Positions 17,191 through 52,792 of a stretch of 64,000 nucleotides of DNA are shown in pieces. Origin of the DNA: Hyalangium minutum (GTDB lineage: Bacteria > Myxococcota > Myxococcia > Myxococcales > Myxococcaceae); NCBI RefSeq assembly GCF_000737315.1, contig NZ_JMCB01000002.1, positions 496,001 through 560,000 of the forward strand, written 5' to 3'. The position numbers and the translations under genes are program-made. Within the stretch, counting starts at the first letter, position 1, and the number at the start of each line of letters is the position of its first letter. The notes beneath the pieces are model-generated. The model was given only the letters and a program-made list of their open reading frames with translations. It searched no databases and was not told where the DNA came from.

Positions 17191-18009
17191 CTACAGCAAC
17201 GCCTCCAGCTCCTGCAGGTGCGAGAGCACCTCGCGCGGGTGCTGGGCCTCTTGCAGGCGGGTGGCGAGGCCATGGCTCGACAGCCTCGCCACGTGCGCCA
17301 GCCGCATGAGCCAGGGCCGGCCGCGCTCGCTGCCCACCATGACGATGAGCACGCGCAGCGGCTGCCCATCCGGCGTCTCATGCTTCAGCGGCTTCGCCAG
17401 GGTCACCAGTGCGGCCACGGAGGGCACTCCCTCCAGGGCCGCGTGGGGAACCGCCACCCCATTGCCCACCGAGCACGAGGCCCCGGCCTCCCGCCGCTCC
17501 AACTCGTCGGTGAGCTGCGAGGCCGCCAGCCCCGGGCAGGCGGCGCAGATGCGCTCGACGGCCATGTCTCGCGCATCCTCTACAGAGGAGCAGGAGAGCT
17601 GGAGGATGATGCGCTCGGGGGCCAGCAGCGGGGAGAGGGCGGGCGACACCTCTTCTCGCGAGGCGTCGCGCATGGGGAACTCCGCGTTGAGGAACTCACG
17701 GACCCGGGTGAGCTGTGCGCTGGTGAGCTGCCTCCGGGCGATGTCTAGGAAGACTGCCCCGGCGCCAGGCACCTGCTCCAGGTAGTTCGCCACCAGCGGG
17801 TTCACCCGGTGCGAGACATCCAGCAGCATCGCGGGGGGCACGCCCAGTTCGTGCGCGATGGCGGTGAGCCGCTCCGGTGTGGGCACGGCGTCCTGGCCAT
17901 GCTCCACGCGGCTCAGGTAGGCGCTGGAGACACCGATGCGCCGGGCCAGGTCTCGCAAGGAGAGGCCCGCGTCAACGCGCAGCAGCCGGATGGTCGCTCC
18001 CAGGTGCAT
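17191..18009 (-). CDS. XRE-family HTH regulator fused to a PTS EIIA (PtsN-like) domain
   Basis: LSLRDLARRIGVSSAYLSRVEHG HTH; GNGVAVPHA with the phospho-acceptor His. Confidence 0.88.
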   Translation of the reverse strand: MHLGATIRLLRVDAGLSLRDLARRIGVSSAYLSRVEHGQDAVPTPERLTAIAHELGVPPAMLLDVSHRVNPLVANYLEQVPGAGAVFLDIARRQLTSAQLTRVREFLNAEFPMRDASREEVSPALSPLLAPERIILQLSCSSVEDARDMAVERICAACPGLAASQLTDELERREAGASCSVGNGVAVPHAALEGVPSVAALVTLAKPLKHETPDGQPLRVLIVMVGSERGRPWLMRLAHVARLSSHGLATRLQEAQHPREVLSHLQELEALL

Positions 18010-18021
18010 GGTCCCTCAGGC

Positions 18022-20175
18022 TCAGGCGGCGGTGCCATCCGTGACGGGGAGCCCGTCCTGGGCTGCCTCTAACACGGTCTCCGCCTGGGGAGCCGGGTGG
18101 CGCACCACCAGCAGCGACACGGGGGAGTCCTGGATGAAGCGCTCGCGCTGCAGGCCCCAGAGCCGCTCCTCCAGGCCCCACTCCTGGCCCACGCCGACGA
18201 TGATCAAGTCATAGCCGCGCGCGGCCTCCGCCAGCGCCGCTTCCTCCGGCTCCGCATGCTCCACCACCTTGAAGGTGACGCGCCGGCCCTCCTCGGGGAA
18301 CAGCTCCTCCACCTGCGCGCTGGCGCGCCCCTTGAGCTCGGGCGAGGTGACGTGCAGCACCGTCACCTCCGCGTCCGCGTGCCGCATGAGCCGCCGCGCC
18401 AGTCCCAGCGCCGCGCGATCATGGGAGCTGCCCATGAAGGGGACGAGCACCCGCCGCACGCTCGACAGCCCGCGGTCCACCAGGACGGCGACGTCCATGC
18501 GCGCCTCTTGCATCACCTCGTGGACCGTGCCGCCCAGCAGCGTGCGGCTCAGCAGGGGCTTGTGCCAGCCCAGCAGCACGAGGTTCGCGCTCTTGGCCGA
18601 GGCCGTGCGGCAGATGTCCGCGCCGGGCTCGCCTGAGACGAAGGAGAGCGGCTTGATGGGGAGGCTCAGCTTGTTCGCGCGCTCCATCATCGGCGTGAGC
18701 GCCGAGGCATCCGCGGGCTGCGCCTCGTGCCGCAGATGGAACGAGGCGCGCTCCGAGGAGGGGATGAGGTGCAGGGCATAGAGCTGGGAGGGATCCTGCC
18801 CTTGGGAGGTGAGGGCGTGCGCCAACGTCACCATGCCCGGCCCCGCGGTACCATGCGAGACGCACATCATCACGGTGAAGGGCGCGGGCATGAGCGCCAG
18901 GGGCACCGAGTTCTCGGGCACCAGGCGGTCGCGCGCCATCTCATCCATGGGGTAGATCCACCGCAGCAGGGGCGTGGTCATGAAGGTGGTGACCAGCGCC
19001 ATGACCACCATCATCGTGAAGAGCTTGGGAGAGATGACGCCCAGGTCCAGGCCGATGTTGAGGACGATGAGCTCCATCAGGCCGCGGGTGTTCATCAGGA
19101 TGCCGACGGCACCCGCCTCGCGCCAGCGCAGGCCCGTCAGCCGGGCGGCCACCGCACTCCCGCCGAACTTGCCCAGGCAGGCCAGCAGGATGATGGCGCC
19201 GCAGGTGAGCCAGGACTCGGCGCTGTTGAGCAGGCCAATCTGCGTACGCAGGCCGCTGTAGGCGAAGAAGATGGGCAGCAGCAGCACCACCGCCACGTCC
19301 TCCAGCTTCTCCGCGAGCGCCGTAGCCAGCCCGCCCTCCTTGGGGATGATGGCGCCCAGCAGGAAGGCCCCGAACAGGGCGTGGATGCCAATGAACTCAG
19401 TGGCCCAACTGGAGGCCAGCAGGAGGATGAGCGTGGCGGCGACGACGTTCTGCGTGAGCCCCTCGCGGCTGGCCACGCGCGCCCCCAGCCGCGCCAGGAA
19501 GGGCCGCACGGCCAGCAGCATGAAGCTGATGTAGAGCACGGTGAAGAGCGTGGTCCACGCCGCGTGCGCCACATCCGAGGCTCGGACGATGGACACCACG
19601 AAGGCCAGCAGGCACCAGCCCGTCACGTCATCCACCGCCGCGCAGGTGATGGCGATGGCGCCCACCCGCGACTGGAGCAGCCGTCGCTCGGTGAGGATGC
19701 GCGCCAGCACCGGGAAGGCGGTGATGCTCATCGCCACGCCCATGAAGAGGACGAAGGAGGAGAACTTCACCGAGGGCTCCGACAGCGACTCGTAGAGCCA
19801 CAGCACCGCGGCGCCCGCGCCGAGCGCGAACGGGACGATAATGCTCGTGTGGCTGATGGCCACCGAGGCGTGGCCCCGGCCCTTGAGGAGCTTGGGGTCC
19901 AACTCCAGGCCGATGAGGAACATGAAGAGGATGAGCCCCACCTGGCTCAGCATCTTCAGGATGCCCATGGAGTTCTGGGGGAACAGGCTCTCCATCACCT
20001 CGGGCGCCAACCAGCCCAGCAGCGACGGCCCGAGCACGATGCCCGCGACCACCTCCGCGATGACGAGCGGCTGTCCGAGTGCCCGGGCTCCCCGCCCAAT
20101 CACTCGCGACAACACAATGATCACGATGAGTTGGACGATGAGCAGGGTGAGAGGACTCTGCGCGAAGCCATGCAT
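18022..20175 (-). CDS. Cation/H+ antiporter (CPA2) with C-terminal USP-like domains
   Basis: About 12 TM segments; SITAFPVLARIL, CAAVDDV, LMNTRGLMELIVLNIG; soluble tail with VLLGWH and LIIVG. Confidence 0.92.
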   Translation of the reverse strand: MHGFAQSPLTLLIVQLIVIIVLSRVIGRGARALGQPLVIAEVVAGIVLGPSLLGWLAPEVMESLFPQNSMGILKMLSQVGLILFMFLIGLELDPKLLKGRGHASVAISHTSIIVPFALGAGAAVLWLYESLSEPSVKFSSFVLFMGVAMSITAFPVLARILTERRLLQSRVGAIAITCAAVDDVTGWCLLAFVVSIVRASDVAHAAWTTLFTVLYISFMLLAVRPFLARLGARVASREGLTQNVVAATLILLLASSWATEFIGIHALFGAFLLGAIIPKEGGLATALAEKLEDVAVVLLLPIFFAYSGLRTQIGLLNSAESWLTCGAIILLACLGKFGGSAVAARLTGLRWREAGAVGILMNTRGLMELIVLNIGLDLGVISPKLFTMMVVMALVTTFMTTPLLRWIYPMDEMARDRLVPENSVPLALMPAPFTVMMCVSHGTAGPGMVTLAHALTSQGQDPSQLYALHLIPSSERASFHLRHEAQPADASALTPMMERANKLSLPIKPLSFVSGEPGADICRTASAKSANLVLLGWHKPLLSRTLLGGTVHEVMQEARMDVAVLVDRGLSSVRRVLVPFMGSSHDRAALGLARRLMRHADAEVTVLHVTSPELKGRASAQVEELFPEEGRRVTFKVVEHAEPEEAALAEAARGYDLIIVGVGQEWGLEERLWGLQRERFIQDSPVSLLVVRHPAPQAETVLEAAQDGLPVTDGTAA

Positions 20176-28654: not shown

Positions 28655-28865
28655 GGAGCTCCGAGCCCCTGCGTCATAGGGGCGAGCCCGAGGGTTTTCA
28701 ACGGACTCCGCACCCCCGGCATGACTTCCAAGAAACGTTCGGTGCCGCTCGTGTGTCTGCCATTCGCCATCGCCTGCTCACTAGGAGGGCGGGTCGATTT
28801 CCTTGAAGAGCAGGGAAAGCGTTAGTGTTGGAAGCCATAAAGCGGGGGCGCCGCGAGGCGAACGC

Positions 28866-30404
28866 ATGAAAGCTTGGAGCGAGATCAAGCCATTGGCGGG
28901 CAAGAGCGAAGCGCCTGCACCTGATGTCTGGGTGAGGCTCCGGGCTCTACGTTCGTCCGACGGGCGCATCATCGACTTCGAGTGCCTGGACAGCTCGCCC
29001 CGGGCTCGGCACGGTGTGCTCCGGTTGTTGCCCGAGAAGGGCCAGCACTTGCTGGACGAGGCTCCTTGGGTCGGCGAGTGCAGCCTCTTTGACGCGTGCG
29101 TCCGGGTGGTGGAGCGGCAGGTGCCGGCCATGGAGCGGGTGAGCCGGCAGACGCCTGCGGGCGTCACCTGGGTGCAGGCGCGGATGGCTCCCAGTGAGGG
29201 CGGGCTCACCCTCTTCCTGGAGGATGTGTCGAATCAGGCCTCGGCCGAGAGAGAGCTGCGCCGGGATCGGGATCTGCTCAACGCCGTCGTGGAGAGCACC
29301 ACGGACGCCGTGTTCGTGAAGGATCTGCTGGGCCGCTATGTGCTGCTCAACTCGGCGGCGGCCCGGGCCTTTGGGCGTTCGGCGGAGGAGATTCTGGGCC
29401 GGACCGACGCGGAGCTGCTGGGGCCGCAGGCGGCCGCGGCGACGGTGGCGCATGACCGGGTCGTGTTCGAGTCAGGGCAGACGGGCACCTATGAGGACGC
29501 GGATGGAGGTCCGGGCTTTGGCAACATCTGGCAGTCCATCAAGGGCGTGCTCCGCCACCCGGATGGGAAGGTGTATGGCCTGTTTGGCATCAGCCGGGAC
29601 GTCACCGTGCGGCGGCGGCAGGAGGAGGAGCGGGAGCAGGAGGGACGCTTCCGCGAGCGGTTCATCGGCGTGCTGGGGCACGACTTGGGCAACCCGCTGG
29701 CCGCCATCCGCTTCTCCGCCGCGGCGCTGCTGAGCCGGGAGACGCTGACGCCCGAGGTGCGGCGCATGCTGCAGCGCATCGACAGCAGCGCGGAGCGGAT
29801 GTCCCGGCTGGTGAAGCAGCTGTTGGACTTCACGCGGGCGCGCATGGCGGGCGGCATTCCCCTGCGCCCGAGCGACGTGTCCCTGGAGGAGGTGTGCCGC
29901 CGCGTCATCGGCGAGCTAGAGCTGGCGCACCGGAGCCGGGAAGTCCACCTGGAGGTGCGCGGAGACTGCCATGGCTTCTGGGACGAGGAGCGCATGGCGC
30001 AGGTGCTCTCCAACCTGGTGGCCAATGCGCTCCAGAACAGCCCGGAGGGCACGCCCGTGAGCGTGCGCCTGGAGGGAGTGGAGTCGCTGCAGCGGGTGGA
30101 GGTGCACAACGCGGGAGCGCCCATCCCCAAGTCCCTGCGCTCCCAGCTCTTCGAGCCCTTCCACGCCTCCGGGAATGGCCCTGGCAAGGTGGCGCGGGGG
30201 GGCCTGGGGCTGGGGCTCTACATCGTCGCGCAGATCGTCCAGGCCCATGGCGGGCGGGTGGATGTGTCCTCCTCGCTGGAGGAGGGCACCAGCTTCGTCA
30301 TTCTCCTGCCCCGCTCGGTGCCTGCACCGGCGGGCACGGTGGAGGAGTCCGAGGCGCGGCTCGAGCCAGACTTCGCCCACGAGGGGAACGCGGCCCGGAG
30401 CTGA
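28866..30404 (+). CDS. PAS-domain sensor histidine kinase
   Basis: AVFVKDLLGRY PAS; GHDLGNPL H-box; NLVANA N-box; GLGLGL G2. Confidence 0.9.
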   Translation: MKAWSEIKPLAGKSEAPAPDVWVRLRALRSSDGRIIDFECLDSSPRARHGVLRLLPEKGQHLLDEAPWVGECSLFDACVRVVERQVPAMERVSRQTPAGVTWVQARMAPSEGGLTLFLEDVSNQASAERELRRDRDLLNAVVESTTDAVFVKDLLGRYVLLNSAAARAFGRSAEEILGRTDAELLGPQAAAATVAHDRVVFESGQTGTYEDADGGPGFGNIWQSIKGVLRHPDGKVYGLFGISRDVTVRRRQEEEREQEGRFRERFIGVLGHDLGNPLAAIRFSAAALLSRETLTPEVRRMLQRIDSSAERMSRLVKQLLDFTRARMAGGIPLRPSDVSLEEVCRRVIGELELAHRSREVHLEVRGDCHGFWDEERMAQVLSNLVANALQNSPEGTPVSVRLEGVESLQRVEVHNAGAPIPKSLRSQLFEPFHASGNGPGKVARGGLGLGLYIVAQIVQAHGGRVDVSSSLEEGTSFVILLPRSVPAPAGTVEESEARLEPDFAHEGNAARS

Positions 30405-30423
30405 GGGGCCGCTGTCCCTGGAA

Positions 30424-31812
30424 TCAGACGCGCGTGTCGCCCACGGGGATGGGGCGGCCGCACAGCAGCATCGTGGTGCGCAGCATGCGCTCGGCGCCCA
30501 GCCGCTGCAGCTCCTGGCGCAGCATCGGGTGGTGAGGCAGGAGCCGCTCGAGGCTCGCCGAGTCCAGCTTCAGCAGCACGCAGGACGTCGTGGCCCGCAC
30601 CGAGGCGGTGGCCAGCTTGCTGCGGAACAGGGAAATCTCCCCGAAGAGGTCGCCCTCGGCCATCTCCGGGTAGGGCGTCTCGTGGCCATCCACGTGCTGG
30701 TGGAAGGCGACGCAGCGGCCGCGCAGCACCAGGTAGAGCGCCTGCGCGGGCTTGCCTCGGGTGAGGATCTCCTCGCCCTCCGCGACGGAGACGGGGGAGA
30801 AGGCCTCGGACACCGCCTGCTGGAGATCCTCGGGCCATGCGGCGAAGAGCGGGTTGCTGCGCAGCGCGTTGGCCAGCAGCCGCTGCCGGTAGAGCCGGTG
30901 CACCACCTGGTTGAGCTGGGGGAAGCGCGCGGCAATGGTCTCCATGCGCTTGCGGGAGAACTCCAGCAGCACGCACTCGGAGGTGGCCACCACGGTGGAG
31001 AGCCGGGTGCCCTCGTACAGGAGCGCCATCTCTCCGAAGAACTCACCCTCACCCATTTTCGCCAGCATGAGGGGCTGGCTGGTCAGGCCCTTGCGCACCA
31101 CCTTCACCTCGCCCTCGACGATGATGAACATGGAGGTGCCCGGGCTGCCCTCCGGGACGATGAGCTCCCCCGGCTTGCACACGCGGCGCTCGACGCCGGC
31201 GAGCACCTCGAGGAACGCCTCGCGCCCCAGGGAGGAGAAGAACGGGATGGGCAACATCGGCTCCCTGGAGGAGGCCGGCACCGGAACCAGGGTGGGGCGC
31301 CGCTGGAGCAGGCCGGGAGGGACGGGCGCGCTGGACTCCTGGCGCTGGGCCTGCGAGCGGGAGTGCTCGCGCCGGGTGTGGAGGGTGGCCAGCAGCGACT
31401 GGGTGCGGGTGTGCCCCGGGTCCAGTTGGAGGATGACCTTGCACAGCGCGATGGCGCGCAGCAGCCACCCTGTCCGGGCCCACATCTCCGCCGCCGCCTC
31501 GTACTCCGCGATGGCCTCCGTCGTGCGCCCCAGCCGCTGGAGCACCTCGGCCACCTTCTGCCGGTGGAGCGGCTCGCCGGGGGCCGCCTTCGCCACCTCC
31601 TGGAACGCGGTGAGCGCCGCCTCCAGCTTGCCCTCGGCGAGCCGCGCCGTGCCCTGGTCCTTGGCGCGGCGCAGCATGAGGGCATTCACGGTGGGGAGTG
31701 CGCTCACCGGCGCCAGACGCGGGGCGGACGGACGGCTGCCCGGGCGTTGCTCCGAAGAGGAGGAGGTAGGAGCCTGCGCGATACGGAACGAAAGGTAGTT
31801 CGGCTTGGACAT
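30424..31812 (-). CDS. TPR + tandem cyclic-nucleotide-binding-domain protein
   Basis: N-terminal TPR (WLLRAIALCKVILQLDP); cNMP pockets FFGEMALLYEGTRLSTV and LFGEISLFRSKLATASV. Confidence 0.88.
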   Translation of the reverse strand: MSKPNYLSFRIAQAPTSSSSEQRPGSRPSAPRLAPVSALPTVNALMLRRAKDQGTARLAEGKLEAALTAFQEVAKAAPGEPLHRQKVAEVLQRLGRTTEAIAEYEAAAEMWARTGWLLRAIALCKVILQLDPGHTRTQSLLATLHTRREHSRSQAQRQESSAPVPPGLLQRRPTLVPVPASSREPMLPIPFFSSLGREAFLEVLAGVERRVCKPGELIVPEGSPGTSMFIIVEGEVKVVRKGLTSQPLMLAKMGEGEFFGEMALLYEGTRLSTVVATSECVLLEFSRKRMETIAARFPQLNQVVHRLYRQRLLANALRSNPLFAAWPEDLQQAVSEAFSPVSVAEGEEILTRGKPAQALYLVLRGRCVAFHQHVDGHETPYPEMAEGDLFGEISLFRSKLATASVRATTSCVLLKLDSASLERLLPHHPMLRQELQRLGAERMLRTTMLLCGRPIPVGDTRV

Positions 31813-31870
31813 GGGCGTCTCCGCTCGGTGAGGGAATGACGCCAGAATAAAGAAGCGAGCTTTTGGGGGC

Positions 31871-31909
31871 TGTGATGCAGCTTACAGGCGAGCTGTGAGC
31901 GCGCGCACA
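31871..31909. promoter_or_regulatory. Two tandem CRP-type boxes in the divergent promoter
   Basis: TGTGA-TGCAGC-TTACA (31871-31886) and TGTGA-GCGCGC-GCACA (31894-31909), each one mismatch from TGTGA-N6-TCACA. Confidence 0.75.
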
Positions 31910-31945
31910 GACCCTTGTACGGCTCGTGCTATCAATTGCGCCACC

Positions 31946-32626
31946 ATGTCCTACGCACAATTGCTGGCAGGAATTTCCATCTTCGAGAACCTGCAGACCG
32001 ACGAGCTGGACCAACTGTCCGCGCTCCTTCGCTCCCGCCGCTATGCCCGCAATGAGGTCATCTTCCATCAGGGGGATGTGGGCACGGCGCTCTACATCGT
32101 CCGAAAGGGGCAGGTGGCCATCCGTCTCAGCTCGGACGAGGGGAAGGAGGCCATCCTGGCGCTGCTCGATCGAGGCGATGTCTTCGGCGAGCTGTCCCTG
32201 CTGGACGACGAGCCGCGCTCGACGGACGCGGTGGCGCGGGACGAGGTGGACCTGCTGACCCTCCAGCGGGAGGACTTCCGCCGCTTCCTGGAGGAGCGGC
32301 CACACCTGGCCATGAAGCTGCTGTCCGCGCTGACGCGCATGGTCCGGCGCGTCACGCAGCTCATTCATGACGCGACGTTCCTGGATGCGCGCACGCGGCT
32401 GGTGCGCGTGCTGCTGGACCTGGCCGAGCAGCAGGGAAAGCCCGGCGCGGACGGCCTGGTCATCAACCAGAAGCTGACCCAGTCCGAGCTGGCCAACCTG
32501 TGCGGCCTCACCCGCGAGAGCACCAACAAGTGGCTGCGCTTCTACGTGCGCGAGGGCCTGCTCTCGTACGAGGGCGGCAAGATTACGCTGGTGAAGCCCG
32601 AGCGGCTCAGCCAGGAGGCGGAGTGA
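31946..32626 (+). CDS. Crp/Fnr family transcriptional regulator
   Basis: VFGELSLLDDEPRS cNMP pocket; HTH LTQSELANLCGLTRESTNK. Confidence 0.93.
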   Translation: MSYAQLLAGISIFENLQTDELDQLSALLRSRRYARNEVIFHQGDVGTALYIVRKGQVAIRLSSDEGKEAILALLDRGDVFGELSLLDDEPRSTDAVARDEVDLLTLQREDFRRFLEERPHLAMKLLSALTRMVRRVTQLIHDATFLDARTRLVRVLLDLAEQQGKPGADGLVINQKLTQSELANLCGLTRESTNKWLRFYVREGLLSYEGGKITLVKPERLSQEAE

Positions 32627-32644
32627 GCCCGCCCCGGGCGTGAG

Positions 32645-34240
32645 TCACTTCCGGGGTGTGGCGTTCCAGTCCACGCGGTAGAGCGTGAGGGGCTCCACCT
32701 TGCCCTTCACCTGCACGGGGGGCAGCTTCGTCAGCGGCCACGAGCGCTCCCGCAGGCGCTGGAAGGTGGTCTCGGCGAGGCAGATCTCTCCATCGTTGGC
32801 GGCGCTGCAGATGCGGCTGGCCACGTTGGTGGTGTCTCCAATGGTGGCGTACTGCAGGTAGTGCTCGGAGCCGATGTTGCCTGCGGCGACGCGGCCCGTG
32901 TTCAGGCCCACGTGGATCTTCAGCTCCTGGCGGCCCTGGCTCTTCCACTTCGCGTTCAGGTCCGTGAGCGCGTGCTGCATCTCCACGGAGGCGCGCAGCG
33001 CGCGGTCCGCGTCATCTGGCTGGGAAAACGGCGCGCCCCAGATGGCCATGAGCGCGTCGCCGATGTACTTCTCCAGCGTCCCCTCGTAGCGGAAGACGAT
33101 GTCTGCCATCACCGGGTAGTACTCGTTGAGCAAATCCATCACCTGCATGGGGTGCAGGGTGGAGGACAGCGAGGTGAAGCCGCTGATGTCCGAGAAGAGG
33201 ACCGTCACCTCCGTCTCGACTCGCTCCAGTTGAGCGCCCTGGCTGCTATGCAGCTTCTTGATGACGGGGGCGGAGAAGAAGCGCTGGTAGGTGGTGCGCA
33301 GGGCCGCTTCCTCCGCGAGCCGCTGGGAGAGCATGGAGCTCTCCAGGGCGATGGCAGCCTGGTTGGCGAAGGCGGTGAGGAACTCCAGGTCCTCCTGGGC
33401 GAAGCCGTTGGCCTGGGAGCGGTTGTCCACGTACAGCACGCCCAGCACCTCGTTGTGAGGCTTGAGCGGCACGCACATGGAGGCCTGGATGGCCTGCATC
33501 ATGACGGAGGAGGCACCCTCCAGGCGGGGATCCACACGCGCGTCCGCGAAGAGCGCGGCCACGCTGTGCTTGCGCACGTAGTCCACCACGTGGTGGCTGT
33601 AGAACGGGCCCGAGGGCACCTCGCCCGAGGACAGCCGTGCCACCCGGGGACGGAGCGTGCCGGTGGCCGGGTCCACCAGGAAGACGGCGGCGCGGTCCAC
33701 CTCGAGGATTCGGAAGACGAGCTGGATGATGCGCTCGAGCAGCTCGTCGATGGGGCCCAGGGAGGAGAGCAGCTGGCTCACCTTGAGCAGCACCTGGAGC
33801 TTCTCCGCGGCGCGGCCGTCGGCTGGGGCCGCCTGCCGCAGCTTCAGCACGGAGCTGCCGGGCGTCGGGGCCGCCAGGAGCAGATCCTCCATCGCCGCGG
33901 GCGAGAAGCGGGTCCGCAGGTTCTGGGTGTGGGTGGGCTTCGGCTCGTTGACGGGGGCCATGAGCTTGAAGGCCACCTCGCCGCAGCGGAAGGACTCGCC
34001 TGGGTGGAGCTCCCGTCCGCGCGGCTCGACCCGGACCTCACTGACGAACGTGCCGTTCTTGCTGCCCAGGTCGGTGATGAGCACCTGGTCGCCCTTTCGG
34101 GCGAGCTGCGCGTGGCGGCGGGACAGGCTGGCGTGGAGCACGCAGACGCTGTTCTCCTCCGTGCGCCCAATGGTCGTCACGCCCTCGGGAAGGGGCAGTA
34201 CCTTCTCCGTGAGCAGGCCGGGATTCATGATGAGCCACAT
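32645..34240 (-). CDS. FHA-GAF-class III nucleotidyl cyclase (copy 2)
   Basis: FHA (IGR...SRRHA...DLGSKNGT), GAF, LFSDISGFT, EKYIGDA, NVASR. Confidence 0.93.
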   Translation of the reverse strand: MWLIMNPGLLTEKVLPLPEGVTTIGRTEENSVCVLHASLSRRHAQLARKGDQVLITDLGSKNGTFVSEVRVEPRGRELHPGESFRCGEVAFKLMAPVNEPKPTHTQNLRTRFSPAAMEDLLLAAPTPGSSVLKLRQAAPADGRAAEKLQVLLKVSQLLSSLGPIDELLERIIQLVFRILEVDRAAVFLVDPATGTLRPRVARLSSGEVPSGPFYSHHVVDYVRKHSVAALFADARVDPRLEGASSVMMQAIQASMCVPLKPHNEVLGVLYVDNRSQANGFAQEDLEFLTAFANQAAIALESSMLSQRLAEEAALRTTYQRFFSAPVIKKLHSSQGAQLERVETEVTVLFSDISGFTSLSSTLHPMQVMDLLNEYYPVMADIVFRYEGTLEKYIGDALMAIWGAPFSQPDDADRALRASVEMQHALTDLNAKWKSQGRQELKIHVGLNTGRVAAGNIGSEHYLQYATIGDTTNVASRICSAANDGEICLAETTFQRLRERSWPLTKLPPVQVKGKVEPLTLYRVDWNATPRK

Positions 34241-34263
34241 ACGCCCTCCGAATGCACGAGCTT

Positions 34264-35856
34264 TCACTGCGTGGAGCCGTCGCGCCAATCCACCCGGTAC
34301 AGCGTGAGCGGCTCCTGCTTGCCCTTCACCTGCACGGGCGGCAGCTTCGTCAGCGGCCACGAGCGCTCCTTCACCCGCCGGAAGGTGCTCTCCGCCATGC
34401 GGATCTCCCCCGCGGGCGTGGCATCGCAGATGCGGCTGGCCACGTTGGTGGCATCCCCAATCGTTGCGTACTGCAGATACTGCTCGGAGCCGATGTTGCC
34501 CGCGGCCACTCGGCCCGTGTTCAGCCCCACGTGGATCTTCAGCTCGGTCTGGCCCTGCGCCCGCCAGCGCGCGTTCAGGTCCGCCAGCGCGCGTTGCATG
34601 TCCACCGCCGCGCGCAGCGCCCGGTCCGCGTCCTCGGGCTGCGAGAACGGCGCGCCCCACACCGCCATCAGCGCGTCGCCGATGTACTTCTCCAACGTCC
34701 CCTCGTAGCGGAAGACGATGTCCGCCATCACCGGGAAGTAATCATTGAGCAGGTCCACCACCTGCCGCGGGTTCAGCGTGGAGGACAGCGCCGTGAAGCC
34801 GCTGATGTCCGAGAAGAGGACCGTCACCTCTGTCTCGACGATGTCCAGGTGCGCCTGCTTGTCGCTCTGCAGCTTCTTGATGACCGTGGGCGGGAAGAAG
34901 CGCAGGTACGCGTTGCGCAGCACCGCCTCCTCCGCCACCCGCTGCGACAGCATCGAGTTCTCCAAGGCGATGGCGGCTTGGTTGGCGAAGGCGGTGAGGA
35001 ACTCTAGGTCTTCCTCGGTGAAGCGGTTGGCCTGGGCCTGGTTGTCCACGTACAGCACGCCCAGCACCTGGTCCTGCGGCTTGAGCGGCACGCACATGGC
35101 CGAGCGGATGGACTGCAACATCACCGACGAGGCCCCATCCAGCCGGGGATCCTCGCGCGCGTCCGAGAAGAGCGCGGCCACGCTGCGCATGCGCACGTAG
35201 TCCACCACGTGCTGGCTGTAGAACGAGCCCGAGGGCAGCTCCCCCGTGGACAGCCGCGCCACCCGGGGCCGCAGTGCTCCGGTGGCCGGGTCCACCAGCA
35301 GGATGGCCACCCGGTCCACCTCGAGGATCTGGAACACCAGCTTGAGGATGCGCTCCAGCAGCCCGTCGATGGGACCCAGCGAGGACAGCATCTGGCTCAC
35401 CTTGAGGAGCACCCGCAGCTTCTCGGCGGAGCGGGCGTCCGCCTCCCGCGCGGGCCTCAGCCGCAGCGCCGAGGCACTCCCGGGCGCGCGGTCCAGCTCC
35501 AGCATTTCCTCCATCGTCAGAGGCGAGAACCGTGTGTTCAGCCCCTGCACATGGGTGGGCTCGAAGGCCCCTTGCGAGGACGAGAGCTTGAACTGCACGT
35601 CCCCACACTGGAACGAGTCCCCGTCCTGCAGCGCGAAACGGTCCACCCGGGTGCCGTTGACGAGCGTGCCGTTCTTGCTGCCCAGGTCCACCAGGATGAC
35701 GCGGTCCCCGGTGCGCTCCAGCCTGGCGTGCCGGCGCGACAGGCTCATGTGGAGCACCCGGACGCTGTTCTCGTCCGTGCGGCCGATGGTTGTGTGCCCT
35801 TCAGGCAGCGCGTGCTGCTGCTCGTCGAGCAGGCCTGGGTTCACGATCAGCCACAT
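34264..35856 (-). CDS. FHA-GAF-class III nucleotidyl cyclase (copy 1)
   Basis: Same architecture and long near-identical peptide stretches as the downstream paralog. Confidence 0.93.
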   Translation of the reverse strand: MWLIVNPGLLDEQQHALPEGHTTIGRTDENSVRVLHMSLSRRHARLERTGDRVILVDLGSKNGTLVNGTRVDRFALQDGDSFQCGDVQFKLSSSQGAFEPTHVQGLNTRFSPLTMEEMLELDRAPGSASALRLRPAREADARSAEKLRVLLKVSQMLSSLGPIDGLLERILKLVFQILEVDRVAILLVDPATGALRPRVARLSTGELPSGSFYSQHVVDYVRMRSVAALFSDAREDPRLDGASSVMLQSIRSAMCVPLKPQDQVLGVLYVDNQAQANRFTEEDLEFLTAFANQAAIALENSMLSQRVAEEAVLRNAYLRFFPPTVIKKLQSDKQAHLDIVETEVTVLFSDISGFTALSSTLNPRQVVDLLNDYFPVMADIVFRYEGTLEKYIGDALMAVWGAPFSQPEDADRALRAAVDMQRALADLNARWRAQGQTELKIHVGLNTGRVAAGNIGSEQYLQYATIGDATNVASRICDATPAGEIRMAESTFRRVKERSWPLTKLPPVQVKGKQEPLTLYRVDWRDGSTQ

Positions 35857-35956
35857 ACGCCACCATCGTACCAGCCAGCGGAGAGGCCGTCGGTTTCCCT
35901 TCCCCGCTTTACTCCCAGTTCAGGCCCTGCACCGGAGGCCCCGGGTGCAACAGCGC

Positions 35957-35972
35957 TGTAACGAGGCTTACA
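35957..35972. promoter_or_regulatory. Palindromic CRP-like box upstream of the cyclase pair
   Basis: TGTAA-CGAGGC-TTACA, about 100 bp upstream of the cyclase ATG at 35856. Confidence 0.6.
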
Positions 35973-36252
35973 TCCCGCGCCGCGCAGCGAGGCGCAGGCG
36001 CAGGAAGTCATCCTGGAGGCCCGGATCCACCAACTCCAGGGCTGCGCGTGGGCTGAGCGCGCGGTACTCCTCCTCGTCCTCTTCGTCGCCCTTCTTCTTG
36101 TCATCCTTCTTGTCGTCATCCCCCTCGGGCAGGGGCACGGGGCGAGCCAGCCTCGGCTGGATGGCAGGCTGGCTCAGTGCGTCGGCCCGGGCTGCTGTGA
36201 ACAGGGTGACCAGGGAGAGGATGAAGAGCAGAGCGACGGTGAGTGTCTTCAT
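35968..36252 (-). CDS. Small secreted acidic/low-complexity protein
   Basis: MKTLTVALLFILSLVTLFTAARA signal peptide; DDDKKDDKKKGDEEDEEE tract. Confidence 0.55.
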   Translation of the reverse strand: MKTLTVALLFILSLVTLFTAARADALSQPAIQPRLARPVPLPEGDDDKKDDKKKGDEEDEEEYRALSPRAALELVDPGLQDDFLRLRLAARRGM

Positions 36253-36319
36253 GGGAACGGCTCCGAGCGGGCGACGTGGAGGGTGGACGGGTCCGTCCCC
36301 AGGGATATTCACCCGGAGG

Positions 36320-36664
36320 CTACTTCGCAGGGGCGGCAGCCGACTCACTGCTCAGGCTGCGCACGTGCTTCACCAGGGCGTCGATCTGCTCCGGGGTGAG
36401 CTTGTCCTTGAACGGCTTCATCTTGGGGTTCTCCTTGGAGCCGTTGGTGATGTAGTCGCGGATCTTCTCGTCCGAATGCCGCTTCTGCCAGCCTGCATCC
36501 GTCAGGTCGGCGATCTTCTCCTTCTCGCCCATCTTGGTCTTCGCCTTGCCGTCCGCGCCGTGGCAGCTCTGGCACTTGGCCTTCCAGATGTCGGCCACGG
36601 AGTCCTCGGCGAACGCGGCGCCGGACAGGGTGAGGGCCAGAACGATGGCAAGTTGCTTCTTCAT
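36320..36664 (-). CDS. Periplasmic monoheme cytochrome c
   Basis: Signal peptide, CQSCH, distal Met in KMKPF; GGAGG RBS. Confidence 0.92.
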   Translation of the reverse strand: MKKQLAIVLALTLSGAAFAEDSVADIWKAKCQSCHGADGKAKTKMGEKEKIADLTDAGWQKRHSDEKIRDYITNGSKENPKMKPFKDKLTPEQIDALVKHVRSLSSESAAAPAK

Positions 36665-45370: not shown

Positions 45371-48205
45371 TCAGGGAGCTCCAGCCCCCACCACCAGCGC
45401 AGGCGTGGTGCGGAAGAGGTAGGAGCCGTCTCCCAGCTGGCCCTCCCAGTTGAGGCCAAAGGACGACAGCGTGCCGGTGCTCTGGGTCAGCGCCAGTGAG
45501 TACGCCTTGCTCGCGGCGACGCTCCGCCCTCCGCTCAGTCCCAGCACCTTCTTGGGCGTGGGGTTGTTGTAGGAGACGGAGAAGAGATCCCCTCCGCCCA
45601 ACTGGCCATCGTAGCCCTCGCCCCAGGCCCACACGGTGCCGTCGGACTTCACCGCCAGCGAGTGGCTGTAACCCGCGGCCACCGCCACCACGCCTGTCAG
45701 CCCCACCACCTGCACCGGGGTGTTGCGCGAGGTCGTCGTCCCGTCGCCTAGCCGGCCCGAGCCGTTGTACCCCCAGGCCCACACGGTGCCGTCGGACTTC
45801 AGCGCCAGCGAGTGATCCTCTCCCGCGGCCACCGCCACCACGCCCGTCAGCCCCACCACCGGCACCGGCGTGAGGCGGCGCACCGTCGTCGTCCCATCGC
45901 CCAGCTGGCCAATGTTGTTGTGGCCAATGGCCGACACCGTCCCGTTCGTGTGCAGCACCAGGGTGTGGCGGCTGCCTCCCGCTGCCGCCCTCACGCCCGT
46001 CAGCCCCGCCACCTGCACGGGCAAGGAGCGGCCGGTCATCGTCCCATCGCCCAGCTGGCCAAAGTCGTTGAAGCCCCAGGTCCACAACGTCCCATCCGAC
46101 TTCACCGCCAGCGAGTGGCTATCGCCCGTGGCGATGGCGCTCACGCCCGACAGAGTCGTCACCTGCACGGGGTTGTCATAGATGAAGCCCGAGGGGCCGA
46201 CTCCGATTTGCCCATAGGAATTGGAACCCCAGGACCACACGCTGCCGTCGGACTTCAGCGCCAGCGAGTGCTTCTGTCCCGCCGCCGCCGCCGTCACGTT
46301 GGCCAGCCCCGTCACCAGCGCGGGTGCGTGCTGCTGGGTGCGGGCACGTCCCAGCACGTACGAGTTGAGCGTGCCCGCTCCCCACGACCACAGCGTTCCA
46401 TCCGAGCGTACCGCCAGCCCGTGCCAGTAGCCCGCCGACACCTGCGTCACATTCGACAGGTTCACCACGGGCACCGCTGTGGCGCTCTTCATCCGCTGCC
46501 CGTCTCCCAGCTGGTACAGCTCGTTGTTGCCCCAGGCCCAGGTCCTGCCGTCGGAGTCCCTCGCCAACGAGTGGCGGGTGCCGGCCGCCACCGCCACCAC
46601 GCCGCTCAGGCTGGGCACCTGAACCGGCGTGAAGCGCGAGGAGGTGGTTCCATCTCCCAGCTGGCCGTAGCTGTTGTCGCCCCAGGCCCAGACCGTGCCA
46701 TCGGACTTCAGCGCCAACGAGTGCTCCATCCCCGCCGCCACCGCCACGACGACACCCGTCAGCCCCACCACCTGCACCGGCGTGAAGCGCGAGGAGGTGC
46801 TTCCGTCGCCCAGCTGGCCACGGCTGTTGTAGCCCCAGGCCCACACGGTGCCGTCTGACTTCAACGCCAGGGAGTGCTCCACCCCCGCCGCCACCGCCAC
46901 CACGCCCGTCAGCCCCGGCACCTGCACCGGCGTGAAGCGTGAGGTGGTGCTCCCATCCCCCAGCTCGCCCTGGCTGTTGTAGCCCCAGCTCCACACCTGG
47001 CCCGCTGAGTCCACGGCCAGGGAGTGGTGGCTGCCGGCTGCTACCTGCACCCCGTTGCTCAGGCCAGGCACTTGCGCGGGCAGCGTGCGCCCCAGGGTGG
47101 TGCCATCCCCAAGCTGGCCGTACTGGTTTCTGCCCCAGCTCCACACCGTGCCGTCACCGCGCACCGCCAGCGAGTAGTGGTTGCCCCCGGCCAGCGCAAT
47201 CACTGAGTCCAGGCCTACCACCTGTTCCGGAGTATCGCTGGCGTTGAACGTGGTCCCATTGCCCAACTCGCCATCGGTGTTGCTGCCCCAGGCCCACACC
47301 GTCGCGTCCGTCTTCAGGGCCAGCTTGTGCCCGGTCCCCGAGACCACGGACACCGCATCACTCAGCTCCCACACCTGCCGTCCCTGGGCCCGGTAGGCAC
47401 TGTAGTCCGTCGTGTAGCTTCCGCTCTTGCCGCCCCAGCTCCACACCGTGCCATCCGCCGCGAGGTTCACGGAAGTCTCTGTGCCACCCGCCACGAGGGA
47501 AGGGCGCACGGGAGCAGGGGGCGGCGGCGGTGGCGGCGGCTCGGAGGTCCCGACGCCGAAGGCCAGATCGTCGCGATCATCGTAACCGCCGCTGCTGCAG
47601 GGATTGGCCTCTCCCCCGTAGCGGAAGACGGCGCGCACCGCCTGCACGCTGCCGCCTTCGGAAGGCAGGGTGGCGTTGGCCGTCAGCACCTGAACTCCGG
47701 CCCCGGCCGGCGTCAGCGTGGTGACGTACGTCCACGAGGGGTTGCTCGCATCCGCCGCCAGGTAGAGGTCCAGGTGATCCGCGGTGTAGCCGGACCAGGC
47801 CCAGACGGTGGCCTCGATGGTCACTTCCTTCCCGGGTGCCAGGGCGCTGTCATCCGGGGTGGAGACCTTCAGCCGATCCAGCGATTCGTCGCCGTGGAAG
47901 AGGCCCGAGTCGCCGTCCGCACAGGTCCCGCCCAGCGTGTTGGGAGCATTAGGCTCTGCACCCAGCTGCCCGCGGCCCAGCACCAGAGAGGGGCCCGTGT
48001 CGCAGCCCGAAGCCCCCGCCGCACATGTGGGCACCTGCAGCACCGCATCGAAGCTCGCCGTCTCCACCAACGCCGCTGCGGTGGCCGTGGGCTGACGTAA
48101 CCCCGTCTGCTCCTGCTGCGCCGTGGCCTCCGGTGCGGCTCCGCATCCCGTTGCCAGCGCTCCCAGCAGCAGCCATCCCATTCTCCACTTCTTTGATGTT
48201 CGCAT
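45371..48205 (-). CDS. Lipoprotein with N-terminal Cys-containing beta-domain and 14 RCC1-like repeats
   Basis: Lipobox LATGC; repeats of [22 protein letters not shown]; PPPPPPP linker. Confidence 0.9.
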
Positions 48206-49343: not shown

Positions 49344-50480
49344 TCAGCGGCCTTGGCTCTCGAGGCCCGCGCCCACGTGCCTGGGCAGGCGGAGACGGAA
49401 CGTGGTGCCTTCGGCGCGCGAGGAATGGACGTCCACCTCGCCGCCGTGAGCGCGAGCGATGTGGTCCACGATGTAGAGGCCCAGGCCCACGCTGCGGCTC
49501 GCGCCGTCTCTGTGGGCGACACCGCGCTGCATCGGCTGGAAGAGGCGAGCACGAAGCTCGGAGGAGATGGGCTCCCCCTCGTTGTGGACCTCGAGCGTCA
49601 AGACGTCCCCCTCGTCTCGCGTCCTCACCGTGACGGGCGTGCCGTGGGGGCTGTAGCGGAGGGCGTTCACCACGAGGTTGTCCACCGCCTGGGCCAGCCG
49701 ATCGGGATCCCACTCGCCCCCGCTCTCGCCCTCGTAGTGCGTCCGGAGCTCCCGGCCCGGGTGCGTGACTTGTGCCTCCTCGACGACCTGTTGCACCAAC
49801 TCCCGGAGGAACACCGGCTTGCGCTCGACCCGCATGCCCCCACCCATCCGCGCCTGGGTGAAGTCGAGCAGGTCGCGAATCATTCGCGCTGCGCGCTCGC
49901 CCGAGGACTGGATGCGCAAGATCGACTTCGTGACACGCGCGTCCAGGTCATCCCGCTTCAAGACAGCGCTCGACGCCAGGAGGATGGCGTTCAGCGGATT
50001 GCGCAGATCATGGCTCACGATCCCGATGAGCTGCTGCTCGAACTCGGCGCGTGCGCGGAGTTCCGCCTCGGCGCGCTTGCGCTCGGCCTTCTCATGCGCT
50101 TCGCGCAGCGCGCGCTCGACACTCGGGACCAGGCGCTCCAGCCGGTCTTTGAGGACGTAGTCCGTGGCCCCCCGCTTGAGCAACTCGATGGCTCGTTCTT
50201 CTCCCAGCGCTCCCGAGACAAAGAGGAAGGGCACGTCAGGACAGGAGCGCTGGGCCACGGCGAGCGCCGTCAGCCCGTCAAACCCGGGGACGTTGTAGTC
50301 CGAGAGGATGAGATCCGAGCGGCCGCCAGCGAGGGCCGCTTTGAAGCCCGCCTGTCCGGACGCCCGGGTGAGCTCGAAGTCGAGCCCACCCTCTTCCAGG
50401 ACAGCTTCGATGAGCTGCGCGTCCTGAGGACTGTCCTCCAAGAGGAGGATGCGCAGCGGCCTGCTCCTGAGCTGTGTCAT
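49344..50480 (-). CDS. Hybrid response regulator-histidine kinase
   Basis: REC (LLLED, ILSDY, YVLK) + SHDLRNPL, NALRY, GLGL; ATGA overlap with the upstream kinase. Confidence 0.9.
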   Translation of the reverse strand: MTQLRSRPLRILLLEDSPQDAQLIEAVLEEGGLDFELTRASGQAGFKAALAGGRSDLILSDYNVPGFDGLTALAVAQRSCPDVPFLFVSGALGEERAIELLKRGATDYVLKDRLERLVPSVERALREAHEKAERKRAEAELRARAEFEQQLIGIVSHDLRNPLNAILLASSAVLKRDDLDARVTKSILRIQSSGERAARMIRDLLDFTQARMGGGMRVERKPVFLRELVQQVVEEAQVTHPGRELRTHYEGESGGEWDPDRLAQAVDNLVVNALRYSPHGTPVTVRTRDEGDVLTLEVHNEGEPISSELRARLFQPMQRGVAHRDGASRSVGLGLYIVDHIARAHGGEVDVHSSRAEGTTFRLRLPRHVGAGLESQGR

Positions 50481-52603
50481 GGGGAGAGTCCGTGCCCCTC
50501 CCCTGGCGCACCCACGCTCGGCAGAGTGAAGTGGAACGTGGCTCCCTCGCCTGGGACGCCCTCGGCCCACGTGCGGCCCCCGTGGCGCTGCACGACGCGG
50601 CGCACGTTCGCCAGCCCGATGCCCGTGCCTTCGAACTCATCGACGGTGTGAAGCCGCTGAAAGACACCGAAGAGCTTACCGACATACTGCATGTCGAAGC
50701 CCACCCCGTTGTCGCGCACGACGACCTCTGTTTCACCCGGGAGCGCACGCGCGGAGATCTCAATGACAGCCTCTGGCGTCCTCCGGGTGTACTTGAGGGC
50801 GTTGGCCAACAGGTTCCTGAAGACGTGCCGCAGCAGCGCCGCGTCCCCTTGGACCTGCGGGAGGGCTTCCACCTTCCATGTCACCCGGCGGCCTTCCACG
50901 TCGAGCAAGAGCTCTCTCCGCACTTCCTCCACCAGCGCGCTCAAGGAGACAGGCGCCATACGCATCTCCGCGCGCCCCATGCGGCTGAAGGTGAGCAGGT
51001 CGTCAACGAGCTGCCCCCCCTTCTGAGCGGCCTCCGAAATGGTCTTCAAATAGTCCTGGGCCTTGGCGTCGAGGATCGCCTGGGTGCGCTTTTCCAGCAG
51101 TTGGGCGAAGCCTGTGATGTGGCGCAGCGGGGCGCGCAGATCGTGGGACACCGAGTAGCTGAAGGCCTCCAGCTCCCGGTTGGCCTCTTCCAGCTCCCGG
51201 GTCCGCTCCTCCACCCGTCTCTCGAGGGTGGAGTTGAGCTCGCGGATCCTTGCTTCCGCAGCCTTCCGCTCGGAGATGTCGAAGAAGGAGGCCACCACAC
51301 CGGACGTGCCTCCTCCGGGGTTTGGCAGTGGCAGGGCGTTGATGACCAGCCATACGAGGCTGCCATCCGGCCGGTGCACCCCCATCAGCGTGCCCAGCTG
51401 GGGCCTGCCGGTCTGGAGGGCTACGACGGGCGGGTGCTCTTCCGCGGGGAAGTGGGTGCCGTCCTCACGGACAGGGCGCCAGCGCGGGTCCGCCGGGGTG
51501 CGGCCCATCATCTGCTTTGTGCTGAGCCCCAGCAGCTGCTCGGCGGCGGCGTTCGCGAAGCGGATCGCCCCCTCCGCGTCCTGCAAGGTGATGCCCTCCG
51601 CGAGCGACGCGACAATCGTGCGCAGCAGGGCTTCGCTCTCCCGCAGCGCGTGCTGAGCGCGTTGTTGCTCGACGGCGCCCGCCAGCTCGCGGGCCACGGC
51701 CTCGAAGAACGCCTGGTACTTCTCGTCGAACCTCAAGCGCGGGCTGATGCCGAGCACCAGCGCGCCCGCGGCCGCGTGGGCCGGAGAGCGCCGGAGCGGG
51801 AGCACCATCGCCGATCGTGTCGGCTCTGGCCATGGGCCCGTGTGGCTGCGCCCCAGCAGCGCTTCGAGATCGTCCACCCTCGCCGCCAGTCCAGGCTCGA
51901 ACGACTGCTCTACCGTCGTCCGCAGCGACTCTGGCAGCGAGTCCAACCCAGGGTGCGCCACGGGCTCCAGCCTGTGAGCAGCCGCGTTCCACAGGTACAC
52001 CACCGCGAAGGGGAGATCCTGCGCGTTTCCGCGGAAGGCGGCGGTGGCCTCGCCAATCACCTCGGCCTGAGTCGTGGCCCGGGGCGCGATGGCGCGCAGC
52101 GTGGCGAGCCTCCGCTCCGCGAGTACCTCCTCGGTCACTTCGTTGACGGGCTGCAGGAAGCCGTTGATCCGGCCGTCGTCATCCCGGAGCGGAACGAAGG
52201 AGAACGTGAAGTAGGCCTCCTCCGTGAAGCCATGACGCGTGACCGGGATGAGCGTCTTGTGCACCTGGATGACTTCGCCCTGATCCAACACCCGCCGCAT
52301 CCACGGATAGATGGTGGGGTAGGTGTCCGGCCAGCAGTCGCGGTAGGAGGAGCCCAGGTGCTGGGGGTGCCGCGGTCCCATGATGACGGAGTAGCCCGCG
52401 TTGTAGATTTGAGTCTGCTCGGGCCCCCAGAAGATGATGGCGGGCGTGGGCAGCCGCAGAATCATGTCGGTGTAGCCCTGGAGCCGCTGGGGCCACGACT
52501 CGGGCGGGCCGAGGCCCGCAGCCGACCAGTCGTGCCGGCGAATGCGCTCACCCATCTCCCCGCAGTCTTCAAGGAATCCTGGAGCGCCTTGGGCGTCCGA
52601 CAT
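50477..52603 (-). CDS. PAS/GAF sensor histidine kinase (Cph1-like transmitter)
   Basis: GEMGERIRRHDWS N-terminal module, PAS, FSYSVSHDLRAPLRHI, FGVFQRLH, GTGIGLA. Confidence 0.9.
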   Translation of the reverse strand: MSDAQGAPGFLEDCGEMGERIRRHDWSAAGLGPPESWPQRLQGYTDMILRLPTPAIIFWGPEQTQIYNAGYSVIMGPRHPQHLGSSYRDCWPDTYPTIYPWMRRVLDQGEVIQVHKTLIPVTRHGFTEEAYFTFSFVPLRDDDGRINGFLQPVNEVTEEVLAERRLATLRAIAPRATTQAEVIGEATAAFRGNAQDLPFAVVYLWNAAAHRLEPVAHPGLDSLPESLRTTVEQSFEPGLAARVDDLEALLGRSHTGPWPEPTRSAMVLPLRRSPAHAAAGALVLGISPRLRFDEKYQAFFEAVARELAGAVEQQRAQHALRESEALLRTIVASLAEGITLQDAEGAIRFANAAAEQLLGLSTKQMMGRTPADPRWRPVREDGTHFPAEEHPPVVALQTGRPQLGTLMGVHRPDGSLVWLVINALPLPNPGGGTSGVVASFFDISERKAAEARIRELNSTLERRVEERTRELEEANRELEAFSYSVSHDLRAPLRHITGFAQLLEKRTQAILDAKAQDYLKTISEAAQKGGQLVDDLLTFSRMGRAEMRMAPVSLSALVEEVRRELLLDVEGRRVTWKVEALPQVQGDAALLRHVFRNLLANALKYTRRTPEAVIEISARALPGETEVVVRDNGVGFDMQYVGKLFGVFQRLHTVDEFEGTGIGLANVRRVVQRHGGRTWAEGVPGEGATFHFTLPSVGAPGEGHGLSP

Positions 52604-52792
52604 GTTGCTTGTGTAGCCGGTGAGCCCCCCGTGCCGAAGTCCCAGCACGGTGAGAAGGAGCGGATCGCAAACTTCTCAACGTTTCCCAGACGCTCCTCAA
52701 GCCTCGGCAGAGGAAGCACGCAGGCGAGCGGTCTCTTGGATCGCTGCAACTCCATCCACCCTGACGAGGGGTGTGTGGTATCGCCTGCGTGA

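Follow-up and report, generated by a model that had tools for sequence, protein, structure and literature searches.

In the cyclic AMP (cAMP) cascade of Sinorhizobium meliloti, the cyclases CyaD1/CyaD2/CyaK, the Crp-like regulator Clr and the target smc02178, of undefined function, act together (PMC4222275). The present work concerns a locus of Hyalangium minutum within a stretch of 64,000 nt (GCF_000737315.1, contig NZ_JMCB01000002.1, positions 496,001 to 560,000 of the forward strand), the whole of which is called the window. At 30424-35856 of the window, open reading frames (ORFs) supported by the GC content of the third codon position (GC3) and Pfam scans gave four genes, here called cycA, cycB, crp and effector. 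They encode two FHA-GAF-class III cyclases, a Crp regulator and a TPR protein with two domains that bind cyclic nucleoside monophosphates (cNMP), as had already been noticed in an earlier reading made without database searches (the sequence-only reading). Both systems combine cyclases of class III with a regulator of Crp type and a target gene. In S. meliloti, cyaD1, clr and smc02178 are reportedly neighbours, and the target promoter is said to have a Clr box. However, its cyclases have sensor domains other than FHA-GAF, its target is not cNMP-binding, and neither tandem boxes at a fixed 23-bp spacing nor an associated kinase gene is described.

Two single proteins can also be compared with the effector. 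CbpA of Pseudomonas aeruginosa, for which PMC11139211 cites Endoh and Engel (2009), is said to be a cAMP receptor other than a transcription factor, with a gene induced by Vfr and cAMP and with one good and one degenerate cNMP domain. It resembles the effector in feed-forward logic and in the asymmetry of its two domains, but it has no TPR module, is unlinked to a cyclase or to vfr, and is likened to the effector at the cNMP fold only. CbpB of Myxococcus xanthus, reportedly the subject of papers by Kimura et al. in 2005 and 2009, is said to be a homologue of the regulatory subunit of protein kinase A (PKA-R), to have two cAMP-binding domains and to interact with the Ser/Thr kinase SpkA. It is like the effector in being myxobacterial, in its two cNMP domains and in its tie to a Hanks-type kinase. 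CbpB may or may not belong to the family of the effector; a paralogue 40% identical to the effector was found in M. xanthus (L048), and no kinase gene adjoins it. The domain families discussed here are well known, and clusters of cyclase, Crp and target have precedents. The literature search gave no paper on FHA-GAF cyclases or TPR-cNMP proteins of myxobacteria. Neither literature nor NCBIfam gave a description of the cassette, of a TPR-tandem-CNB (cNMP-binding domain) family with an Arg-less second domain, or of a fixed 23-bp tandem-box promoter. In the sequence-only reading, too, the locus was not recognised as a characterised system.

We consider it fairly probable that the locus holds a three-layer cAMP-type cassette combining synthesis, a transcriptional read-out and a post-translational read-out of the nucleotide. 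A genome search anchored on the effector gave 80 loci, onto which the window proteins were mapped, and further contexts were added for homologues of the cyclases, the effector and Crp. Orthologous effectors (at least ~44% identity) had a Crp and/or an FHA-GAF cyclase linked to them. Cyclase, Crp and TPR-cNMP protein were linked in Hyalangium, Stigmatella, Archangium, Vitiosangium, Pyxidicoccus, Myxococcus sp. and several metagenome-assembled genomes (MAGs), with varying order and orientation. The order of the window was found in Hyalangium and related MAGs (L002, L005, L006, L088, L089, L093). Stigmatella aurantiaca (L085) has kinase-cyclase, cyclase, crp, effector; six Archangium loci have crp, kinase-cyclase, cyclase, effector; Vitiosangium (L052) has crp, cyclase, effector; an Archangiaceae MAG (L021) has effector, cyclase, crp; and Pyxidicoccus and Myxococcus sp. 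(L091, L092) have crp, a short effector and cyclase. The sequence-only reading had looked to synteny in relatives, and the linkage was indeed kept in at least seven genera; because it outlasts at least four different gene orders, it argues for cycB, crp and effector as a functional unit. Paralogous TPR-2xCNB genes (38-44% identity) were mostly solitary. The FHA-GAF cyclase was found alone in Melittangium and in M. xanthus, and the silence of the literature on the cassette may be due to this state of M. xanthus.

The genes crp (31946..32626, + strand) and effector (30424..31812, − strand) are divergent, as the sequence-only reading had stated, across a gap of 133 bp. This gap contains what would be direct wiring, which that reading overlooked, namely tandem CRP boxes before the effector gene. 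Box 1, which is crp-proximal (31894..31909, TGTGAGCGCGCGCACA), and box 2, which is effector-proximal (31871..31886, TGTGATGCAGCTTACA), both listed without strand, are the only sites of the 64 kb that depart from TGTGA-N6-TCACA by no more than one base, and they lie exactly 23 bp apart. When tandem pairs with a spacing of 21-25 bp were permitted in 1.58 Mb of fetched sequence, a sample biased towards cassette loci, 32 pairs were found against a mean of 0.3 in 20 shuffles. The spacing was exactly 23 bp in 32/32 pairs, and 42 of the 49 near-consensus single boxes in this sequence sat within 23-bp pairs. The 23-bp pair was conserved upstream of the effector gene in ~30 loci. Pairs stood directly upstream of effector-family genes whatever gene preceded, with the one exception of L075, and so the pair accompanies effector and not crp: it occurred in Archangium and Vitiosangium, where a cyclase gene precedes, and in Cystobacter fuscus (L018 vs L086), where crp is unlinked. 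Cyclase-only loci had no tandem pair. The exceptional pair, at position 550 of L075, has a weak second box with 3 mismatches and may be a chance match. Boxes at 23 bp were also carried by the paralogous TPR-2xCNB genes L047, L050, L059 and L070 (Vitiosangium/Archangium), which have no cyclase or crp nearby; one regulator may control several effector-family members per genome.

Alignment of orthologous upstream regions placed the putative effector promoter at a fixed distance from the boxes. In loci of the Hyalangium/Stigmatella/Myxococcus type, box 2 is followed after exactly 21 nt by a TAnnnT/CAnnnT hexamer, which in the window is the -10-like TATTCT (31844..31849, − strand). Because this gap is fixed, the centre of box 2 (31878.5) would lie 41.5 bp upstream of a predicted transcription start of effector near 31837. 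A box centre at -41.5 is typical of promoters that E. coli CRP activates in the class II manner, and the effector promoter appears to share this geometry. No -35 match was found in the effector promoters across the genera examined, and no sigma-70 consensus promoter or terminator consensus was found in 30300-36400. The same wiring could have the opposite sign, with Crp repressing effector (and itself) from the boxes and the nucleotide relieving or imposing the repression. The boxes do occupy much of the 133-bp gap, the end of box 1 is 36 bp from the crp ATG, a bound dimer could occlude a promoter there, and the promoter positions are themselves predictions. However, the fixed 21-nt spacing between box and hexamer, which sets the centre at -41.5, together with the missing -35 match across genera, points to class II activation and away from occlusion. 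Toward crp, relatives differ in their distance from box 1 (~35 to 138 bp), which speaks against a conserved occlusion geometry on this side. We therefore hold repression to be unlikely. A conserved class II geometry toward crp was dropped for the same variation in distance.

Crp is a CRP-family regulator of 226 aa with a cNMP-binding domain (PF00027, 7e-27) and HTH_Crp_2 (PF13545, 8e-14). Its best solved relatives, matched over the full length at E ~1e-35, were GlxR of Corynebacterium glutamicum and the CRP of Mycobacterium tuberculosis (Mtb CRP, Rv3676). The cNMP-binding cassette FGELSLLDDEPRST is intact (FGE...PRST) and aligns with FGELSIFDPGPRTS of GlxR, and the recognition helix reads TRESTNK against SRETVNK in GlxR. 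GlxR and Mtb CRP have both the cassette and the R-E-x-x-N-K helix, and are both said to bind TGTGA-N6-TCACA, the type of site predicted for Crp here. They are global regulators; in contrast, the near-consensus boxes in our sample, biased to these loci, lay nearly all at the promoter of one gene family, which suggests a narrow Crp regulon. Orthologues of Crp were 69-96% identical and came from Hyalangium, Stigmatella, Archangium, Corallococcus, Pyxidicoccus and some Myxococcus; none of those listed bore a specific name. Because the listed orthologues are all ~226 aa, the ATG at 31946 was taken as the start of crp. The NCBIfam CRP equivalog model gave 104.6 bits against a cutoff of 266 bits, so Crp is not an equivalog of E. 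coli CRP, and none of the four proteins reached the cutoff of a curated NCBIfam family.

The cassette cyclase cycB (32645..34240, − strand, 531 aa) and the cyclase cycA (34264..35856, − strand, 530 aa) are 74% identical. In cycA, Pfam gave FHA at 22-84 (PF00498, 7e-18), GAF at 164-298 (4e-18) and Guanylate_cyc at 343-518 (8e-30), and cycB showed the same architecture above curated cutoffs; the cyclase domains matched PF00211 at 8e-30 and 3e-32, above cutoff, and the structures of Cya2, CyaB and CyaC in the Protein Data Bank (PDB). The start of cycB was assigned to the ATG of MWLIM at 34240 and not to the GTG at 34660 of the mechanical ORF. The catalytic set of cycA is D350/K390/D394/A464/N471/R475/K513. 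Both metal-binding Asp residues, the purine-specifying Lys of EKYIGD, the transition-state pair Asn/Arg in NVASR and the phosphate-binding terminal Lys were invariant in an alignment of 20 family members. With all catalytic residues predicted within one chain, cycA and cycB can each be competent as a homodimer. The first specificity residue was Lys (EKYIGD) in 20/20 members, as in P. aeruginosa CyaB (3R5G) and in 6FHT, an adenylyl-cyclase Cya2 obtained by engineering (DKFMGD), whereas native Cya2 (2W01, DEFMGD) has Glu. Characterised adenylyl cyclases specify adenine by Lys with Asp, or by Lys with Thr in subclass IIIb. Judged by the Lys, and by the likeness of Crp to GlxR and Mtb CRP, cAMP is the likeliest product, although it is not assured. 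The phosphothreonine-binding residues of the FHA domain (GR / SxxH / NG) are kept in the TIGR, SLSRRH and SKNGT loops of both cyclases and throughout the family. An NKFDE motif defines the cNMP-binding GAF domains of the PDE2/CyaB1 type, and the cyclase GAF, which reads ...NRFTEEDLEF..., matches it only partially.

The effector, 462 aa long, contains TPR_19 above cutoff and two stretches of cNMP_binding (3e-40). Its AlphaFold model had a mean pLDDT of 77 and comprised a disordered N-terminus (1-40), a six-helix TPR module (~42-150, pLDDT >90), a disordered linker (152-185) and two beta-barrel domains linked by helices, CNB1 (~190-320) and CNB2 (~321-450). In a Foldseek search with this model, the top 50/50 matches were tandem CNB structures of PKA-R or protein kinase G (PKG), with probability 1.0, and phmmer against the PDB agreed (E ~1e-18 to 1e-21). 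The effector thus resembles PKA-R and PKG in its tandem CNB-A/CNB-B, its flexible linker and its N-terminal helical docking module. It is unlike PKA-R in having TPR instead of the D/D four-helix bundle and a CNB2 without the phosphate-binding Arg, and it has no conserved pseudosubstrate and no AGC-type catalytic subunit present; the linker holds RRPTL, a motif that was unconserved in orthologues in the family alignment. CNB1 retains the phosphate-binding Arg (GTRLST). The sequence-only reading had described a reader with two cNMP domains; both domains are there, and the canonical phosphate-binding cassette is found in one of them only.

From these data a mechanism can be proposed. The cyclases would work as dimers gated by FHA, which would dock on the phosphothreonine of a partner, and by GAF, which would respond to a small-molecule ligand. 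In relatives the FHA partner would be a co-transcribed protein composed of Ser/Thr kinase, receiver and (degenerate) cyclase; here cycB would be read from the cycA transcript, and any kinase input would have to be supplied by a kinase encoded elsewhere. The GlxR/Mtb-CRP-like Crp would be loaded with the nucleotide, which is most likely cAMP. Crp-cAMP would then bind both boxes and most likely activate effector in the class II manner, and the distal box would probably serve cooperativity and/or autoregulation of the divergent crp. The effector, which is PKA-R-shaped, would bind the nucleotide at CNB1 and alter what its TPR module holds, a presumed target protein. Since the receptor would depend on the nucleotide for its synthesis as well as for its loading, the circuit would form a coherent feed-forward loop.

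Several observations count against this proposal. The second specificity residue of the cyclases is Ala (QYATIG) in 20/20 members, and the product is not certain for that reason. In the C-helix, Crp has Val-Thr at the positions that we take to be Thr127-Ser128 in E. coli CRP and Thr-Asn in Mtb CRP. The -10 element of the effector promoter is weak, and that of Archangium loci is different. CNB2 of the effector reads SKLATAS, with Ala at the Arg position, where 17/17 aligned members have Ala, Val or Thr, and the orthologues of Myxococcus sp. and Pyxidicoccus consist of the TPR module and the Arg-less domain only. Nucleotide binding by the effector is not assured, because CNB2 is Arg-less family-wide and is the only CNB of the Myxococcus/Pyxidicoccus form.

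Some of these residues bear on the identity of the messenger, which might be cGMP or another cyclic nucleotide, as reportedly in the cGMP/CgrA cyst system of Rhodospirillum centenum. Among solved structures, the catalytic domain matched Synechocystis Cya2 (2W01) best, which is said to be a guanylyl cyclase; the second specificity position holds a non-canonical Ala; and the C-helix of Crp departs in its residues from cAMP-specific CRPs. In addition, both cAMP and cGMP have been reported to change in M. xanthus development (PMC12288465). On the other side stand the Lys at the first specificity position in 20/20, shared with adenylyl cyclases and 6FHT where native Cya2 has Glu, and the Leu after the Arg of CNB1 in place of the Thr reportedly typical of cGMP-selective cassettes. 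Taken together, we regard a messenger other than cAMP as improbable.

The cassette of the window lacks a gene that its close relatives have. All sampled relatives whose order is of the Hyalangium type carry, directly upstream of cycB, a ~2-kb gene encoding Pkinase, receiver (REC) and cyclase domains. It was found between or beside the cyclases in L002, L005, L006, L088, L089 and L093, including the closest relatives, L089 (effector 84% identical) and L093 (Crp 96% identical), and the pairing of kinase gene and cyclase was also seen in Archangium, S. aurantiaca and Corallococcus. The kinase-REC-cyclase protein keeps HRDLKPAN and DFG. In its cyclase domain the Lys is kept, as are the metal-binding Asp residues except in L089; Trp replaces the catalytic Arg (NTAAW) and the terminal Lys is lost. 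A degenerate cyclase domain encoded beside a competent cyclase recalls the C1/C2 domains of mammalian adenylyl cyclase, and that such a pair would form a heterodimer with one active site is pure inference. The window is unlike C1/C2, with the degenerate partner absent and both cyclases complete. In L093 (ENA contig_4335), the locus closest by Crp, mfd, the histidine kinase gene and cycB are each split into several called genes, which are probably long-read frameshift errors and not pseudogenes, and a large Pkinase-AAA-GAF-HK gene stands in place of cycA after the kinase-cyclase gene.

In the window, the stop of cycA and the start of cycB are separated by a spacer of only 23 bp (34241..34263, − strand). 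Comparison of the junction with L089 and L006 showed that the spacer retains the GGAGG ribosome-binding site of cycB, and its last 9 bp, including GGAGG, match the sequence before cycB in L089. No Hanks kinase was found in the 64-kb window by tblastn with the kinase domain or by Pfam on all GC3-supported ORFs. On the simplest reading, the spacer is the scar of a recent clean deletion of the kinase gene and its promoter, which fused cycB to the cycA transcript; cycB, which here lacks a separate promoter region, is probably transcribed together with cycA. In a neighbour-joining tree, cycA of the window fell into a clade linked to cytochrome bc genes (with L089, L088, L006 and S. aurantiaca L083), apart from the clade of cassette-linked cycB, which contains the cyclases beside the Ser/Thr kinase gene, crp and effector. 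S. aurantiaca has cytochrome c, cycA, the histidine kinase gene and mfd at one locus without the cassette, and the cassette at another. By descent, cycA thus stands outside the cassette: it is a paralogue in its own right, tied to and resident at the cytochrome bc locus, and the tandem look of the cyclases is the product of a cassette placed beside this paralogue and the later deletion of the kinase gene. The two cyclases can thus no longer be counted as one synthesis unit, as the sequence-only reading had done. Its Ser/Thr-kinase input fared better in part: the FHA residues are kept and relatives have a Hanks-type kinase gene upstream of the cassette cyclase, but that gene is missing here and no Hanks kinase lies in the 64 kb, so that the input is not encoded at this locus. 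Upstream of cycA, a palindrome ACAGCGCTGT followed by TGCACC (~35940-35955) was conserved in the window, L089, L088 and L006 and may be the site of another regulator. A third CRP-like palindrome, TGTAACGAGGCTTACA (35957-35972, 2 mismatches), was treated as chance because it was unconserved in L089, L088, L006 and L083.

A more far-reaching reading of the ancestral cassette is conceivable, and we think it doubtful. The cassette would correspond, in bacteria, to a PKA holoenzyme able to make its own ligand: the TPR-tandem-CNB protein would serve the Hanks-type kinase of the kinase-REC-cyclase protein as a regulatory subunit, released by the nucleotide, and the kinase-REC-cyclase protein would recruit the FHA-GAF cyclase through phosphothreonine into a heterodimer with one active site. 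If this were true, the genome of the window would be a natural knockout of the kinase arm. In addition, the Arg-less CNB2, the sole cNMP domain of the Myxococcus/Pyxidicoccus form, may bind a non-cyclic nucleoside, by analogy with the cAMP-independent PKA-R of trypanosomes, structures of which were among the Foldseek matches.

Two further explanations deny that the genes form a signalling cassette of the proposed kind. Chance neighbourhood in a signalling-rich genome is suggested by the many cyclases and cNMP-binding proteins of myxobacterial genomes (PMC12288465), by the many solitary paralogous TPR-2xCNB genes and by the circumstantial adjacency of cycA. Against it, cycB, crp and effector have stayed together in seven genera although their order took at least four forms, and the effector promoter has sites of the type bound by the closest solved relatives of Crp; chance is plausible for cycA and, for cycB, crp and effector, disfavoured, and as an account of the locus it seems very unlikely to us. 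A Pycsar-like anti-phage system, with a cyclase and a cell-killing cNMP-binding effector, was rejected as extremely unlikely, since the PADLOC models for PycC and Pycsar effectors matched only generic cyclase (4e-27) and cNMP (2e-21) domains, a killing module of TIR or transmembrane type is missing from the effector, which otherwise consists of TPR and linker, the genes are vertically conserved core genes whose divergence tracks genus relationships and which lie beside mfd and a cytochrome bc operon, and a dedicated Crp with binding sites is foreign to Pycsar.

As to the surroundings, the G+C content of the window is ~68%, and reading frames were picked by GC3. Beside effector lie a PAS histidine kinase gene (28803-30404) and mfd. 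The histidine kinase was rejected as a member of the module; it belongs to the chromosomal backbone, because the pair of histidine kinase and mfd adjoins cycA in the cassette-free locus of S. aurantiaca as well. Beyond cycA are genes for a small secreted protein, cytochrome c, cytochrome b, a Rieske protein and a CotH kinase. The right edge of the module in the sequence-only reading, 35972, lies ~115 bp beyond the start of cycA and reaches into a small ORF at its 3′ end (35968-36252, − strand, ~94 aa), which is unrelated and lies between cytochrome c and cycA. Its product begins in the manner of a signal peptide (MKTLTVALLFILSLV...) and is rich in Lys, Asp and Glu in the middle, and S. aurantiaca has a 91-aa gene at the equivalent position. 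Pfam scans of the GC3-supported ORFs of the window gave no phosphodiesterase, output enzyme or target of the TPR module encoded nearby. The module had been called self-contained, a description which is not borne out by a locus without phosphodiesterase and output enzyme, and the local character ascribed to its cNMP signal is unsupported.

Elsewhere in the window, 52793-58879 (+ strand) encodes a protein of 2028 aa with four HisKA-HATPase modules, two receivers and PAS/GAF sensors in one chain; immediately upstream, the opposite strand carries two further histidine kinase genes (49344-50570 and 50477-52648). The product of 45371-48205 (− strand), 944 aa long, contains 12 RCC1 repeats, typically a eukaryote-like repeat architecture. 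Adjacent genes at 17191-18009 and 18022-20175 (both − strand) encode an XRE-type HTH fused to PTS EIIA-2 and a Na+/H+ exchanger fused to two universal stress protein domains. The CotH-family kinase (39038-40855, + strand) has an Ig-like domain and is divergent from the Rieske/cytochrome b operon, and a complete three-domain LigD (phosphoesterase, ligase, primase-polymerase) is encoded at 7862-10459 (− strand).

In M. xanthus, putative cyclases number at least 10 and putative receptors are many, but hardly any of them are characterised (PMC12288465). Cyclic-nucleotide signalling matters in myxobacterial development and stress and is molecularly almost uncharted. The cassette offers a compact, conserved and testable circuit with every component named, from cyclases and regulator through the exact DNA sites to the putatively induced receptor, and H. 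minutum provides a natural variant without the kinase arm. If the reading as a PKA-like holoenzyme were true, bacterial Ser/Thr kinases, FHA docking and cAMP would be joined in one machine.

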